From positions 1 to 64,000 of the forward strand of contig OX337237.1 in assembly GCA_946965045.2 (NCBI GenBank): a stretch of DNA of 64,000 bases. Direction: 5' to 3'. A program made the translations under genes and the position numbers. This document shows, one piece after another, positions 35,195 through 42,431 of the stretch. The notes beneath the pieces were generated by a model that was not told the origin of the DNA, made no database searches, and worked only from the letters and a program-made list of their open reading frames with translations. This DNA comes from Epithemia pelagica (taxonomy: Eukaryota; Protista; Bacillariophyta). Position 1 is the stretch's first letter. Every line of letters begins with the position of its first letter.

Positions 35195-37597
35195 TGTTTT
35201 GCCTAATAACAATTCTATGATCCTAGGACTAAAGCAATCTACATGAGGACGATGGTGGATGATGGTGGATGGAGGTGGAGGATTGTGGACGATTGTTGGA
35301 TGAATGTTGGATGTTGGATGGAGTTCATTGGGGGATAGATGGCATGAAAAAGGTGAAAATGGCGCGAAGCATGAATGTAGACCTTATGCCCTTAGTGTGC
35401 TGGCGTGCGCTTTGAGTCTTACTGGTTTAGGGCTATGACTTTCAGTACCAGTACGTCTTTTAAACTTAACCCCTATTTGTCCTAAATATGGTTTGAGATT
35501 TACGTCAGATTTACGAAAATACATTCAGTAGACACCCACTAGCTACGAGTAGTTCACATCCTTCCTACCTAAGGTAGATACGTATAAAGACTTCGTTCTT
35601 GTTATACTGTGTCACTTTCAGTCTATACTCTTTATTTTAAGCAACATCTTTCACCGGCGTCTCACAGTTCATAACAATAGGTATAAGACCAAAGAAAAGT
35701 ACTGCATTTTATCCATTGTCCATTGTCATTTCCTTTCCCGCACCAACCTTTGTTGTTTTGGTTATGCTCAATTCTCAATTGCGCCCTGATGATCGAGAAC
35801 TGTGAACTGTGAGCTGAGACCTAAGTCCTTTACTAATTTATGATTCATGAGGCCTTCTACTTGGTAGGCGTAATTATAGGTGCTAGTTGCCATTGTCCTT
35901 TCGTTTTTGTCCTTGGTCAATAGTTCTTTCGATCTATCGATATTCGATATAGGATGTAGTAGATGATGGTGGAGACAAATCACCAACCGTCAATCAGTTT
36001 CCTGCTCGGACCATGGCATATCTGAAATAGGAGTAAGAAGAAACCTTGTGAGAAGTTATAAAGCGAGAGAACCTTATTTATTAGTTATAGATATCGACAA
36101 TAGACAAGTCGGAAATCATTGGACAATTGAGAGCTGAGATTGAGAGCCGAGCAGCCGAGAGTCTATCATCTAGCTTTTCATATTATCTTGTCTACTATCA
36201 CCTATCACGCTCCACCCTCTCCCCTCTCCCCACTCGGTCCGCAGAAATCATTATTATAGTGTATCCCAGATGTAACATGGCATATTGCATATACATGGCA
36301 TATGGCGTATATCCTACATCCATTCCTAGTTCCTAGTTCTAGAGTTCCGACTGCTCCTATCTGTTAGCGGTAGTTCCCGCAACAACTTGTCTAGCGCTGA
36401 AGAGACGACAAGTAGAGCGCCAAAGGCACTCTGCACGTTTACGCTTGCCTTACTTACCGTATGTGCAGCAGAAAATCTCTGCTGGAGTTTCTCCAGCGCT
36501 GTATCCACGCGCCCGCTTCCCGCTTACCCTTACCGATTAAAGAGTGAACGACGAACGACGAACGACCTCTAACCCCTACAATTTCTAAATCGTACTGCAC
36601 TATAACTATCGACTTTAGAGGGGTGCATTGTGCATTGTGCATTCGCTGCTGTTTCTCCGATGTCCGAACTCTTCCATAGTGAGCAATGGGGACCCCTTAT
36701 GTAGGGGGTACGAATTGGGGACGATGGCCCCGAAATGGGAATTGGAATTAGGAATGGGTAGCATTCTTCCCGGTAGGCGCGGCGGCTGGAAGAATAGACT
36801 ACCGGTAGTCCCTTTTTTGTCCCTAGGGAAGAATGGAAATGCGAGCTCCCACCTCCCACAGACCGAAGTATTAACTCATACTCCTTGGAGTATGGAAGCA
36901 TGAAACTCAGACGTAGCAAGGCCATGATCTCTCCTCTCTGTTAGGGTCTACTAGGGTGAAGCTGTGACTAGGTGGTAGGTTGTCGAAAACTCGTAAAAAC
37001 TGAATAGCCTTGCTATGACACGATCGAATTCTGATTGTGCAACACAAAACTCGAGCACTTTATATTGAAAGCGGCCATATGACAATGATAGATCGATTTT
37101 TTCCTTGTTGTCCTCTGGTGGAGGCTGTGGGTACAGTCAGCTGCCTACCTACCGGTAGGTACCTACCTAGCCTAGAATTGAAAATCAATCCAGGGTGAAC
37201 GGGGAACGGGAAACGGGGGTGTGGGAGAGAGAGGGGAGTCGGAAGTCGGACAGCGGAAACAAGAAAAGGCGGAAAATGAACTGTGAATGATGAAGGATAA
37301 GCCTGTCGACAAAGTTCTGACTACTAAGTGGCTCTCTGGGACACCCGTGATTTTGGTTCCCACTAGAGAATTTTACCTATTCCGGCAACTGGGTAGCTAG
37401 GGCTGATCGCTGTTTTAGCTAGCTAGCTTTATTTTCTGTACTCTTATTATAGTAATGTAACGACACGTGCTTAAATCAAATAATTAAGTTAACAATTTGT
37501 TTTTCGATGTCGCAACTGAGTCGTGGATTGGGATAATCGCTAAATGTTTCGAGTTTGTGTCATGTCTTGTTTCGGGTTGGTCCCGTATTTAACGGCT

Positions 37598-37713
37598 GGT
37601 TTCGACTTTGTTTCGACTTTGTTTCGACTTTGTTTCGACCTTGTGTCGACTTTGTTTCGGCTTGTTTCGGTTGGTATCGACTTTGTTTCGACTTTGTTTC
37701 GGTTTGTTTCGAC
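37598..37713. repeat. Left subterminal array, ~10 copies of 11-bp TTTGTTTCGAC
   Basis: Tandem degenerate copies read directly from the sequence; no spacers between units. Confidence 0.9.
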
Positions 37714-37853
37714 CCATGATGGCGAACACAATAATCAACCATGGTCGCTCAATGTCGCTAATGGTGGCACGATGAGCGACTCGAGCGAGTGAGAGGGGAG
37801 ATTCTTGTTCACTGCAGGGACAGTCATAAAACAAAGCAACAGACAAGACAAAT

Positions 37854-38312
37854 ATGGTGGAGAAGAAATCGTCCAATCTTCCACCCATCAATGAAAGAAA
37901 GGGGGCAAGGATCAAGATTGTGCTGGGAGACTACAAGGGATTGCGAGCATGGGTGGACACGGCGAAGGAATGCACTCGCCTCTACACGTATGTGATCATC
38001 CAAGTGAAAACAAGTCCTACGGTTCTGAAGGCAACAAGGATTCTACACACAAGTTTTGTGATGGAGGCTGATGTCCAGCTCCCATCAAACAAGGAGGAGG
38101 CAATGCTTTTTGAGAATACAGACATTATGGAGATGTTCATGGTGCTCACAAGGAAAATGGCTGAGTTCGAGGAGATCTCAGGATCAGGAGAAGGAGGAAA
38201 ACGAGTTGCAACTCTGTTCTTGTCATACCTCAATAGAGCCATTGCTGCACAGAATGCCTTACCCAATGAAAAGGCCCGCTGGCGTCGCATCAAGTTCAAG
38301 GGACAGCATTAG
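37854..38312 (+). CDS. Transposon accessory ORF A, 152 aa, KOW-like motif
   Basis: ATG-initiated ORF inside the TIRs. KGARIKIVLGDYKGLRAWVD resembles the KOW consensus G..V.I..G.Y.G..G.V. Confidence 0.65.
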   Translation: MVEKKSSNLPPINERKGARIKIVLGDYKGLRAWVDTAKECTRLYTYVIIQVKTSPTVLKATRILHTSFVMEADVQLPSNKEEAMLFENTDIMEMFMVLTRKMAEFEEISGSGEGGKRVATLFLSYLNRAIAAQNALPNEKARWRRIKFKGQH

Positions 38313-38396
38313 CATACATGAATAACTAATAGGAGTAGTGCATTTCAAACAAAGAATTCGCTTTTACTATGTAGTCAATTACTAGGGGCGTACTGG

Positions 38397-39839
38397 TTAG
38401 TCTTCAAACATGCTCTTGGCCTCGGCCTCCTTCTTCTTCTCAGATTGCTTACCACCAATCTTTTTGCCTCCCTTGAGAGCAATGCGCCAAAACAGGGTCA
38501 TGGCCAGGATTTCTTTGCCGAAGAGGTTTTCTGGGTGGTCCTTCTTTAGCTTGAGAGGGTTCTTGGTGACTGGCACGATGTTATCGTCCAACGAGAAAAT
38601 CTTGTTCTCAAGCTGAACGCCGGGTGGGAAAACCATGATCCAGTAGGCACTAGCACGCCAGTGTTCTTTGGACTCTTCAATCGCAACCTCAGTCGCACTG
38701 TGTGCGTTGAAAGTTGCGTCACACTTGATCTTCGACTCCCTGCCAATCCCCGTATGGTAGCGCTCCGTATCACGAATCCAAAAATCTTGAGCGGGGCCCC
38801 TGAAACGGATGAGTCGTCCTCTCCACATCTCGTCGTAGTCGTCCGTTGGGATGTCCGCTTCCCAGTCGTTCATATCCGGGCAGGCAACGGGCCGGCGGAT
38901 GTGAAAACCGCTGCGAGTGAAAAATCCGTCTTGGTTGATATTTTCGACGAACTGGACATCGAACTCGCGGTGTCGCTCGGCCATCTTGTCTAGACAGATC
39001 GGAATCACCCATGGATTCTTGACTGTACCATTCTGGTTCACAAACCAGGCAGTGGGTACAAAGGCATGTGCCACGTTGGTACGGGCGGCCTGGGCAACAA
39101 GAGGAGAAAGGCGTCCGAAGCGATGCTGTTGTTGGCCAGGGTTAAAGCCACCAGCATGCGCAACAGGACGGGGTGGAGTGTGAAACATCCTCACAGCTTC
39201 TTGGTTTTGGGCCGCTGGGAGAGATGGGACGCTGGCCCTTGCAGCAGGCTTCCTGTCGTCGGCAAGAGAAACCTGGCCAAAGTCTGCTTCAAGCTGGTCC
39301 ACGTTGTCATTTGCAAAGGGATTTCCAATCCCAACCATCGCATATGGGTCTTCTTCTTCTTCGTCGGGAACGATGATCTCTTCATCAGAGGTGGACGGTG
39401 CGGTCGACGCGTTGTCGGAGAAGGCTGGTTTGTCGGGGTAGGCTGGTTTCTTGTTCATCTCTTCGAGGCTTTTGGGACCGGGTGTCACACCAATCTTTTT
39501 CAAGTATGCAATGTAGGCCCTGATTGAGCGGCCCTTGCACTTTGCCCAACGTTGCTGCACTTGCCTGCGAAGCACGGTTCCTTCGGCTCCAAATGTGGTC
39601 GGGTTGGCTGAACACAGTGCCCAGAGGTCGAATGATTCCCTTGTCTCCCCGGACAGTTCAAAGGCTTCAAGGAGGGTCTTGGTTTTCTCAGCACTCAATC
39701 CACCTGGCGCCGGCTTCTTTCGTTGCAAGGTTCCAATCGACGGTTGTTCTTGCTGATCTTGGGCCTCACTGTTGACAGAGTCAACAACCCAATCTTCCTC
39801 TTCGTTGATTTGCGAAAGTTCGTCTTGTGAGATCTCCAT
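38397..39839 (-). CDS. Transposon accessory ORF B, ~480 aa, possible N-terminal trihelix/Myb-like domain
   Basis: ATG at 39839 and a long uninterrupted ORF. A helical N-terminal block (KTLLEAFE...LWALC...LRRQVQQRWAKCK) is followed by an acidic linker and a globular C-terminal region. Confidence 0.7.
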   Translation of the reverse strand: MEISQDELSQINEEEDWVVDSVNSEAQDQQEQPSIGTLQRKKPAPGGLSAEKTKTLLEAFELSGETRESFDLWALCSANPTTFGAEGTVLRRQVQQRWAKCKGRSIRAYIAYLKKIGVTPGPKSLEEMNKKPAYPDKPAFSDNASTAPSTSDEEIIVPDEEEEDPYAMVGIGNPFANDNVDQLEADFGQVSLADDRKPAARASVPSLPAAQNQEAVRMFHTPPRPVAHAGGFNPGQQQHRFGRLSPLVAQAARTNVAHAFVPTAWFVNQNGTVKNPWVIPICLDKMAERHREFDVQFVENINQDGFFTRSGFHIRRPVACPDMNDWEADIPTDDYDEMWRGRLIRFRGPAQDFWIRDTERYHTGIGRESKIKCDATFNAHSATEVAIEESKEHWRASAYWIMVFPPGVQLENKIFSLDDNIVPVTKNPLKLKKDHPENLFGKEILAMTLFWRIALKGGKKIGGKQSEKKKEAEAKSMFED

Positions 39840-40263
39840 GTTTGTTTGTCGAATGGGCAAACGGAGAGAAAACAATCTCCTGGTGGGATCGAGCGAGTGA
39901 GTCGTCTACCTACCGAGATTGCCAATCCTGGTTTGGCATCTACATCAATGGATAACAAATAAACATTGTTTGATTGTCATGTGCATATGTAATAGGATGT
40001 CTATTTAGGCGCAGCCTTCTATGCTTGTGCTCACGAGTTGAGAACTCGTGAATCTGCAGGCGCATCATGTGTCTCTCCTACTTCCCACGGGTCCTAATCA
40101 TGGGGGTCCCCCGCCGTGTGAGACAGGCGTGGAGTTATTGAACACTTTTGTGACAGAAGACAGAAACCTACCTACTAGTGAGTGACCTTCCCGAGTGCCA
40201 ATAGAGTTCTTGTCCCCAAGAATCCATCATTGCATTCGTCACCACATTTTCAACAATCAAAGA

Positions 40264-41187
40264 ATGTTTCTTCAACCGTCGGAAGTCCTCGAAAGGGGCC
40301 TACGGCTTCTTCATGTGGATGATGCGGGCAAATTGACATTGGAACGACGACGACTCAAGTTTACGAAGCACTACGGGTCTCACCCGTTGGTGATTGCTGC
40401 GCAATGGTTCGACCTATGCCACGCAACAGACGACAATGGCGAGGAACTACTATCTACGAATGAAATCAAAAGAGGAGGATTCAAGATGTTCATGGTTGCA
40501 CACTTTTTCCTCTACAACTACACGAGAAATAGTGAGCAGCTCAGTGATCGCTTTGACATGTGTGAGTGCTATGCGAGAGGAGAGCATTTGTGGGGGTGGA
40601 TTCGAAATATTGCGTTTCTCCAGAAGAAGGTAATTTTCTGGCCGAGAATTCTTGACAGTCCCGAGTCTGAGGTTAATGTGTTGTCCGTGGATGGTGTCGA
40701 CAAAAAAGTTTTCGAGCGCAAGCACAAGACTCAAATGCTTCCGTTCGATCGTGGGAACTGCTCTCACAAGCATGCGCACGGTGCTCTGAAATATCAAATT
40801 GTTTTGGCGGCACATCGACCGAGGTGTGTTCACATATATGGCCCCGTGCGTGGGGGAATGGGGGACTTGGAGATGCTCGAACGGTCCGGCGTGTTGGAAC
40901 GACTCAAGCCAGGCAAATTGATTGTGGCTGATCGTGGGTACATTAAGAAGGAGTACAGTGGGAAAATATCCTGGCCTAATCCCCATGAAGATTCCAAACA
41001 AGCCAATAACCTCAAGAGCCGGATCCGTCTTCGGCATGAAAGTTTCAATGGAAAAATGGCTACTTTTGGATGCCTCAACCAGACATGGAGGCATTCGGAC
41101 GAGAAACACGGCATAGCATTTCGTGCAGTCGCTGTGACAGTTCAGTATGCACTTGACAATGGCACAAGTCTCCTATTTGAGCCGTAG
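40264..41187 (+). CDS. DDE_Tnp_4-like (PHIS) transposase with intact D-D-E triad
   Basis: First ATG at 40264; motifs VLSVDGVD, SHKH...LKYQI, IVADRGY, RIRLRHESFNGKM and WRH. Confidence 0.88.
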   Translation: MFLQPSEVLERGLRLLHVDDAGKLTLERRRLKFTKHYGSHPLVIAAQWFDLCHATDDNGEELLSTNEIKRGGFKMFMVAHFFLYNYTRNSEQLSDRFDMCECYARGEHLWGWIRNIAFLQKKVIFWPRILDSPESEVNVLSVDGVDKKVFERKHKTQMLPFDRGNCSHKHAHGALKYQIVLAAHRPRCVHIYGPVRGGMGDLEMLERSGVLERLKPGKLIVADRGYIKKEYSGKISWPNPHEDSKQANNLKSRIRLRHESFNGKMATFGCLNQTWRHSDEKHGIAFRAVAVTVQYALDNGTSLLFEP

Positions 41188-41235
41188 ATTCATCCATAAA
41201 TTCAATGTAGTTGAGATTTGGTTTTCTACTATGTT

Positions 41236-41832
41236 TTACTTGTAGGCTAGGATGTGGTTTGCAAGTTCTCGGCGTCGCATCAATTCGTCCATTGGAGAGA
41301 CAGCAGGTAGATTGAGCTTCTGTTTGGCTTCCTCTTCCTTGAGCCGGAAGTAGTTGAAGTAGCGCACTCGTCTCACTTCTTGGTAGATTCGAAACTTGAA
41401 GATTTTTAGCTTGAATGCCATATAGGCGGGACGCGTCTTCCTCAGTGCCATGGGCGTCAATTTCAAGTGAACGCCATTGGCCACGTCCATCCGGAGAAGC
41501 TTCTTTGCTGGATGGACGTCGAAGACCAGCTCTCCACGGCAGTTCCGGTCCTTTCTTGGATGGACGTGACGGTCAACATGGTGCACCTTGTGGTCACGGT
41601 CCACCAATTCCTGCGCGTTGTTTGATTGCTTGCGGTGGTCCTTCAGTCGTTCCTTGAATTGATCGAAAGGAACATTCGCAAACTCGGGAAGCTTCTTGTA
41701 GAACACAAACAAGTGGTCAGCCGGAACTGCATCCATGCTGTGAAGGAGACCGCCTGGCTCAAGATCTCGAATAAGGACGGCTCGTGCTGCACTGCGACGC
41801 CAGTCAATCCACTCAGACCTTCGTGGCGGCAT
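41236..41832 (-). CDS. Transposon accessory ORF C, 198 aa, two internally repeated basic helical domains
   Basis: ATG at 41832. The two halves (WRRSAARAVLIRDL..G...PEF...F..RL and FDVHPAKKLLRMDV..G...PAY...F..RI) resemble each other. Confidence 0.7.
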   Translation of the reverse strand: MPPRRSEWIDWRRSAARAVLIRDLEPGGLLHSMDAVPADHLFVFYKKLPEFANVPFDQFKERLKDHRKQSNNAQELVDRDHKVHHVDRHVHPRKDRNCRGELVFDVHPAKKLLRMDVANGVHLKLTPMALRKTRPAYMAFKLKIFKFRIYQEVRRVRYFNYFRLKEEEAKQKLNLPAVSPMDELMRRRELANHILAYK

Positions 41833-41836
41833 GGCT

Positions 41837-42005
41837 TGGTTTCGACTTTGTTTCGAGTTTGTTTTGGTTTGTTTCGGCTTTGTTTCGACTTTGTTTCGGT
41901 TGGTTTCGGGTTGTTTCGACTTTGTTGCGACCTTGTTTCGACTTTGTTTCGACTTTGTTTCGACTTTGTTTCGACGTTGTGTCGTGGTTTCGACATTGTT
42001 TCGAG
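41837..42005. repeat. Right subterminal array, ~15 copies of 11-bp TTTGTTTCGAC
   Basis: Same unit and same strand as 37598-37713; starts immediately upstream of the ORF C start codon. Confidence 0.9.
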
Positions 42006-42431
42006 CCAGCAGGTCAAGGCTTTTTTTGGCGAAACCCTATATTAACGGTCATAATAAATGTTGGTCTTGAAGCAAGATCAAGTCTCATAAATACTTGTAA
42101 TCAACGGAAATCGAATTCTTAAGTACAATTCTCATTGTATTGTAGGTAGTCGCTGAAATCACACTGTACTGAATAGGAAGACTACTATGAAAGCGGAAAA
42201 GTCCATACCGCTACCAAAGTAGCGGGTGTCCCTGACATGCTTAGGAAAACGGTACTGAACGAGAATCCGTCATCCGTGCCAGCCTCGTGTCTTTTGTCTG
42301 ATTTCTCGGATGCTCTTTCACCTTTCACCTTTCACAGTACTCTCTACTATTACGTACGTATTACATTGGAAGTTGGAAGGATAAAGCTTTCTACGTTCGT
42401 CATAATAAAAGACTGATTCCATCGTCACCAG

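Follow-up and report, generated by a model that had tools for sequence, protein, structure and literature searches.

A conserved four-gene lineage of PIF/Harbinger-like transposons with CWG target-site duplications in the diatom Epithemia pelagica

Six groups of transposons were defined in the PIF/Harbinger-like superfamily (PHIS) by Han et al. 2015 (PMC4482050), and the canonical groups encode at most two open reading frames, or ORFs (PMC4482050). The stretch analysed here, positions 1 to 64,000 of contig OX337237.1 from the diatom Epithemia pelagica (GenBank assembly GCA_946965045.2), hereafter called the window, contains a 4.9-kb element in which four intact ORFs, named A, B, T (the transposase) and C, are laid out as A> <B T> <C, the arrowheads giving the direction of reading. 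The question raised by this locus is whether a PHIS transposon can own such a set of genes or has captured some of them from its host, and what part the additional proteins might play in transposition. We consider it likely that window positions 37339-42231 form an autonomous DNA transposon of the PHIS, of the cut-and-paste type and with very recent activity, in which B and/or C would act as end-recognition factors. A, B and C are genes of the element and not captured host genes. The conserved multi-gene PHIS lineage to which the element belongs is real, and it is undescribed within the searchable literature. The features of the element are as follows (window coordinates).

37336-37338, no strand: 5' target-site duplication (TSD), CTG; the identical trinucleotide lies beyond the 3' end.
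37339-37357, plus strand: 5' terminal inverted repeat (TIR), starting with GGACACCCG, found by inverted-repeat search.
37599-37713, plus strand: 5' subterminal array, 10.7 copies of the 11-bp unit GTTTCGACTTT, found with Tandem Repeats Finder (TRF).
37854-38312, plus strand: ORF A, 152 amino acids (aa), with a basic, KOW-like N-terminal barrel and a helical C-terminal half.
38397-39839, minus strand: ORF B, 480 aa from the first ATG, with a helical basic N-terminal domain, an acidic disordered linker and a beta-rich C-terminal domain.
39840-40263, no strand: divergent spacer between B and T, 424 bp by measurement (given as ~420 bp in a first-pass annotation of the window), presumed to serve as a bidirectional promoter.
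40264-41187, plus strand: transposase T, 307 aa from the ATG, with the Pfam domain DDE_Tnp_4.
41236-41832, minus strand: ORF C, 198 aa, isoelectric point (pI) 10.2, with two tandem three-helix bundles and a C-terminal helix.
41835-42004, plus strand (that of the 5' array): 3' subterminal array, 16 copies of the 11-bp unit GTTTCGACTTT, found with TRF.
42213-42231, minus strand: 3' TIR, ending with CGGGTGTCC, found by inverted-repeat search and copy comparison.
42232-42234, no strand: 3' TSD, CTG, found by copy comparison.

The first-pass annotation, which had been made from the letters of the window, described a PHIS transposon with a CTG duplication, and every feature that it had placed, the four uninterrupted ORFs included, was found where it had been put. 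The superfamily assignment held as well: the element has a DDE_Tnp_4 transposase, and its TIRs and short TSD recur among copies, with CTG/CTG or CAG/CAG at the copy ends. T matched Pfam DDE_Tnp_4 (PF13359) with an E-value of 1.9e-11 and 44.2 bits (cutoff 24.8), and no second recognisable domain was seen in it. The candidate triad consists of D143 (or D146), D223 and E259, located in the motifs SVDGVD, ADRGY and RHESFNG; it was kept in all eight aligned relatives, which agrees with the annotation's description of an intact DDE triad. A profile search of PDB sequences with T gave no match.

Copies of the element were sought in the genome assembly (60.5 Mb in 23 contigs; below, C with a number denotes a contig of this assembly and L with a number an examined locus). 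The family of the window element was designated F1, while F2 (in L031) and F3 (in L038) are diverged sister families in the same genome. Eight near-full F1 copies were found at 97-100% identity on six contigs, and four of them are essentially identical. Each of the eight has unique flanks, the ends GGACACCCG...CGGGTGTCC, and either CTG/CTG or CAG/CAG outside these ends, with the middle base always in agreement. With eight near-full copies, unique flanks and matching TSDs, the element lies far beyond what chance would produce. The TIRs are imperfect and ~20 nt long (the repeat finder returned 23-nt arms, 83% complementary with flanks included), and their terminal 9 nt are identical in F1, F2, F3 and the non-autonomous derivatives. 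The same ends and a CWG TSD (CTG or CAG) also mark F2, F3, three non-autonomous derivatives and an element in a second assembly (L040). Failure of the TIR/CTG boundaries to recur had been named beforehand as an outcome that would refute the multi-component reading; the boundaries are reproduced in other copies and families.

A paralogous empty site was identified, in which the duplication can be seen directly. Copy L006 interrupts the end of an F2-like element (...AGGTAAAGTCATC-CTG-[element]-CTG-GGGGAACCAAAATGCC...), and both L039 and L040 hold an unsplit version of this site with one CTG (AGGTAAAGTCATC-CTG-GGGGAACC...). A different reading of the ends, in which the TIR is GGGACACCCG and there is no TSD, was rejected because in every copy the central W of one flank agrees with that of the other, and because only one CTG is found at the empty site. 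Full-length ORFs A, B, T and C are kept in six of the eight copies, one of which has an in-frame 18-aa deletion in B; in the remaining two, T and C are broken. In copy L008 (C8:2533889-2540089), where T and C are broken, an insertion of ~1.3 kb lies near element position 112-119.

The three non-autonomous derivatives are L033 (C16:2966500-2971500, 3.2 kb), L035 (C10:2011000-2015500, 1.8 kb) and L039 (C5:1851500-1857500, 3.6 kb). They retain the TIRs, CAG TSDs and the pair of arrays on a single strand; none of the four genes was matched in them. At another locus, L031:979-2300 (C9), an F3-like element or fragment ends in CGGGTGTCC-CTG and an F2 element begins 4 nt further on (CTG-C-CTG-GGACACCCG), so that two related elements are inserted back to back.

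For the analysis of gene content, profiles of A, B and C, together with T, served as queries against the genome, and the matches were clustered. Any A, B, C or T-clade match was held by 54 clusters, in 39 of which all four genes were present; the other 15 were isolated matches, mostly partial. An intact stand-alone host copy of A, B or C was found in none of the 54 clusters. F2 elements have an F1-like layout and ~77-87% nucleotide identity to F1, and the ratio of nonsynonymous to synonymous substitution rates (dN/dS) between F1 and F2 was 0.07 for A, 0.10 for T and 0.17-0.2 for C. Both F2 copies examined in this genome have a broken reading frame in B, which is intact in the second assembly (L040). 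Between the window element and F3, all four ORFs are open, with amino-acid identities of 43% for A, 48% for B, 64% for T and 57% for C; synonymous sites are saturated between F1 and F3 or F4, and dN/dS could not be computed for these pairs. We conclude that the ORFs with measurable dN/dS are under purifying selection.

F3 itself is represented by a 5.07-kb four-gene element with a CTG TSD and about nine near-identical copies, one at L038 (C13:1325000-1334000) and ~8 at further sites that include C2:3064897, C3:1818822, C5:2689103, C6:3028129, C7:1186812, C7:1297386 and C11:1632482. It is a second young family, which is probably active.

Besides the T clade, the genome has ~90 other DDE_Tnp_4 matches at 26-39% identity to T (for example, C7:2996313-2996882, C8:484434-484898 and C2:2603695-2604216), which represent other PHIS families, several of them in many identical copies. 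Within 13 kb of these ~90 sites no A, B or C match was found, save one weak C match ~3 kb from C10:2860711.

Outside this genome, five homologs of B and 30 of C were found, and a word search returned four of A, while a profile search with A returned 596 cluster representatives at E <= 0.001 and 291 at E <= 1e-10. None of the homologs of A, B and C has a name, and they matched no consistent Pfam family (scattered KOW matches were seen in A only). Contigs of metagenome, ENA, NCBI and Logan origin were examined, the genes being mapped with hidden Markov models (HMMs). Partner genes were present on every outside contig long enough to judge, and A always has T, B or C as neighbours. A relative is carried by NCBI assembly GCA_013332805.1.

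The order of the genes on these contigs varies. L043 reads C> <T B> <A at 30-48% identity, and parts of this order are seen in L041, L052 and L056. L048 and L049 read T> A> <B C>, L059 reads C> <T A> <B, and <T A> is found in L055 (an NCBI assembly), L060 and L061. In L047 (ENA ERZ25039549 contig_74613) the order is <B C> <A, with T further on. Across the outside contigs, the orders are A B T C; T A B C; C T A B; and B C A...T. The E. pelagica genome itself also has a second order, <A T> <B C>, composed of two divergent pairs, at C3:785292-789455, C9:2306572-2310730, C17:3081763-3085900 and C7:3688714-3692980, with a T that is ~40% identical to the window T. At one more locus, C16:892501-899839, the order A T B C T B C looks like an internal duplication. 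At L047:1-4598, in the assembly of another organism, a Ty1/copia-type retrotransposon (gag, protease, integrase, RVT_2) directly adjoins the diverged four-gene relative.

Since the four genes stay together through at least four arrangements, a joint function best explains them. The co-occurrence of the four ORFs under purifying selection, which had been put forward as a check, was seen in both its parts (39 of 54 clusters with all four genes; dN/dS of 0.07-0.2 where measurable). The contrary outcome, in which homologs of A-C reside mostly away from transposases as ordinary host genes, did not occur: the homologs adjoin the transposase, and no intact one was found as a lone host gene. All four ORFs are conserved genes borne by the element.

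A reading in which there is no functional multi-gene unit, and the extra ORFs are chance frames or decayed remnants in a repeat, has the lack of named domains as the sole point in its favour and can be set aside with near certainty, given that several families and other organisms retain the open frames at 30-60% amino-acid identity, that dN/dS is low, that the A family comprises 596 cluster representatives, and that the model of C is confident (predicted local distance difference test, pLDDT, of 90).

The properties of the three additional proteins were studied by profile searches and, for B and C, by structure prediction. The basic N-terminal segment of A follows the pattern KG-x-IR/K-hh-x-G-x-Y-x-G. 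When a 121-sequence profile of A was compared with the PDB, the top seven matches were KOW domains of ribosomal uL24 (E-values 0.025-0.04), with KOW domains of Spt5 and NusG matching more weakly. Among the 121 family members, seven matched Pfam KOW (best E-value 0.0012), two matched KOW5_SPT5, and two the SH3 domain of KIN17. The ESM Atlas feature search gave weak KOW and DUF leads for A. The label "KOW-like", which A had been given in the first-pass annotation, thus gains modest support from the uL24 matches and the Pfam matches of family members.

The model of B has an overall pLDDT of 50. The N-terminal domain (aa 47-132) was modelled at pLDDT 81-89; its best VIA-align matches, to the Myb-type domains of Reb1 and PHR, reached a Z score of only 4.5. 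The C-terminal domain (aa 270-467) was modelled at pLDDT 40-70, and about 40 of the 50 listed VIA-align rows for it were HSP20/ACD or CS/p23 domains, at Z 5-7.7, which is below the caution line of Z 8. An HSP20/CS-like beta-sandwich is therefore a low-confidence prediction for this domain. Foldseek against the PDB with the B model gave nothing (E > 0.5), and a profile search of PDB sequences with B gave nothing significant. No Myb/SANT Pfam match was found in 10 members of the B family, nor in A, C or their family members. B had earlier been described as trihelix-like; this was not sustained, the fold matches being weak (Z 4.5) and a match to the Myb/SANT family being absent.

C carries a net charge of +17 and was modelled at pLDDT 90.3, with three-helix units at residues ~5-93 and 98-175 (the third helix is long in both units), followed by a terminal helix; the earlier description of a tandem helical repeat fits this confident model. 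Each half of C matched FF, homeodomain, SANT/Myb-type and transposase HTH domains in VIA-align, at Z 4.5-6. On this model, C is a basic double three-helix-bundle protein, for which DNA binding is plausible. A profile search of PDB sequences with C gave nothing significant, and the ESM Atlas feature search returned nothing for it. HHalign comparisons of repeat 1 with repeat 2 of C, of the B N-terminal domain with the C repeats, and of the A and B domains revealed no significant relation (best E-value 0.023, at a probability of 2%). We therefore do not claim that C arose by internal duplication or that the N-terminal domain of B and C are homologs.

The subterminal arrays are built from family-specific units of 10-11 bp (GTTTCGACTTT in F1, TGGTTTCGAGT in F2 and TTGTATCGG in F3) that have in common a T-rich core containing CpG. 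Within each family both arrays lie on one strand and have equal polarity relative to the gene order; in the 5' array of the window element the TTTCGA core occurs on the forward strand only. As the two arrays share a strand, the cis elements lack mirror symmetry. The element had been called symmetric in layout, which is right for the genes but not for the arrays, which are direct repeats, nor for relatives, which carry other gene orders. The 3' array begins 2 nt upstream of the start codon of ORF C, and the start of ORF A lies 141 nt past the 5' array. The arrays that adjoin the outermost genes, A and C, may control transcription of those genes. By analogy with canonical Harbingers and En/Spm, we take the arrays to be putative binding sites of a protein that the element encodes.

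A working model can be proposed on this basis. B and/or C would attach to the subterminal arrays and recruit T to the transposon ends, which is the role of the Myb-like partner in canonical Harbingers. The beta-sandwich of B would serve protein-protein assembly, and A (KOW-like barrel, helical tail) would act as an adaptor that connects to nucleic acid or a host factor. The Harbinger partner protein, reportedly the subject of work by Sinzelle et al. in 2008, is said to bind subterminal sites and to recruit the transposase. In En/Spm, the subterminal 12-bp motifs are binding sites of the helper protein. Both En/Spm (TnpA and TnpD) and MuDR (MURA and MURB) resemble the present element in having element-encoded helper proteins and subterminal arrays of short motifs, but they belong to other superfamilies (CACTA and Mutator, respectively), make two products, and bear no sequence or fold relation to A, B or C.

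Several observations weigh against the end-recognition model and the functions assigned in it. The window proteins A, B and C match no Pfam family, and none of them matches a solved structure by sequence at significance. The fold matches of B (Z <= 7.7 on a model of pLDDT 40-70) are below the noise guidance of the tool, those of C (Z <= 6) are under its caution level for helical proteins, and Foldseek against the PDB gave nothing for C. The arrays are direct, which is unexpected for sites meant to build a symmetric synaptic complex. Finally, comparable arrays are absent from L043, the one fairly complete metagenome relative, whose ends may, however, be truncated.

The element could be an ordinary family of the NuwaI group, with B as a diverged Myb/SANT partner and the extra ORFs as a minor lineage-specific addition. 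NuwaI elements have a CWG TSD, TIRs that usually start with GGG, two ORFs (a DDE-only transposase and a Myb/SANT protein) and a mean length of ~4.5 kb, and were found in animals only (PMC4482050). The element resembles this published group description in its TSD, the hallmark of NuwaI, which was found on every copy examined, as well as in a transposase without added domains, a TIR that starts with GG, a length of ~4.5-5 kb, and accessory ORFs; the N-terminal domain of B, helical and basic, has the weak Myb-type fold matches noted above. It differs from the same description, in which the Myb/SANT partner is recognisable by Pfam, in having four conserved ORFs, no Myb/SANT match in any of the 10 B-family members, a TIR starting GGA (GGACACCCG) and a diatom host. 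The first-pass annotation had given CWG TSDs as characteristic of NuwaI, and this part stands; the two-ORF content and the Myb/SANT partner are not seen here, and membership in the group is unproven. On balance, we regard the NuwaI reading as possible but doubtful.

With canonical PIF/Harbinger elements (Harbinger3_DR, PIF, Pong and those of Ectocarpus), the element has DDE_Tnp_4, a 3-bp TSD, short TIRs and dependence on a separately encoded partner in common, but the canonical elements have a TWA TSD and two genes, with a Myb/SANT/trihelix partner, whereas here a CWG TSD is found in all copies, B and C are the candidate partners, and there is an additional KOW-like protein, A. In the brown alga Ectocarpus, every autonomous Harbinger consists of two genes in tail-to-tail arrangement (PMC12477816).

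A more far-reaching version of the four-gene interpretation is that transposition obligately requires all four proteins, T, A, B and C, acting as one system, an undescribed multi-subunit form of eukaryotic DDE transposition, in which C and B would read the direct, CpG-containing arrays, possibly in a methylation-sensitive manner, the KOW-type A would link the complex to transcription elongation, replication or another process of the host, and CWG targeting would have arisen independently of the animal NuwaI elements. We offer this only tentatively, as possible but doubtful.

Alternatively, the element may be a two-component Harbinger with passengers, in which T and B suffice while A and C are old acquisitions that aid the element in some other way (anti-silencing or copy-number regulation) or simply hitch-hike. 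Canonical PHIS elements need at most two proteins (PMC4482050), the outermost position of A and C beside the arrays is compatible with regulatory modules, the word-based search found A in fewer relatives, and the gene order is fluid, all of which would fit passengers. Yet A and C accompany T and B in all 39 complete clusters and, in other organisms, across at least four gene orders; their dN/dS values are low (0.07 for A, about 0.2 for C), the genome search yielded no intact stand-alone copy, and pure hitch-hikers would be expected to have been lost in some lineages. We therefore judge the passenger reading to be rather unlikely; an element that owns and uses A, B and C remains our preferred interpretation.

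Apart from the transposon, the genome was seen to contain at least 11 full-length silicon transporter (PF03842) genes, with E-values of ~1e-226, including two tandem pairs on contig 11 (C11:1001834-1006098 and C11:3159754-3166955); these genes mark the host as a diatom.

In the searchable literature on diatom Harbingers, CWG targeting and extra ORFs, no description of this gene set was found. To our knowledge, eukaryotic cut-and-paste DDE transposons are regarded as one- or two-protein machines. Since four proteins were kept here through deep divergence (~30% identity) and repeated shuffling of gene order, the extra proteins probably meet some need of the element. The lineage thus raises the question of how Harbinger-type ends are recognised without a recognisable Myb partner, as well as the questions of what role KOW-like and HSP20/CS-fold proteins play in transposition and how the CWG target is chosen. 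Several families are young, and four identical and six intact copies are present, which makes the element a candidate for an active transposon in diatom genetics, with possible uses in insertional mutagenesis and gene delivery in diatoms, a group with few such tools. CWG-targeting PHIS elements now reach beyond animals.

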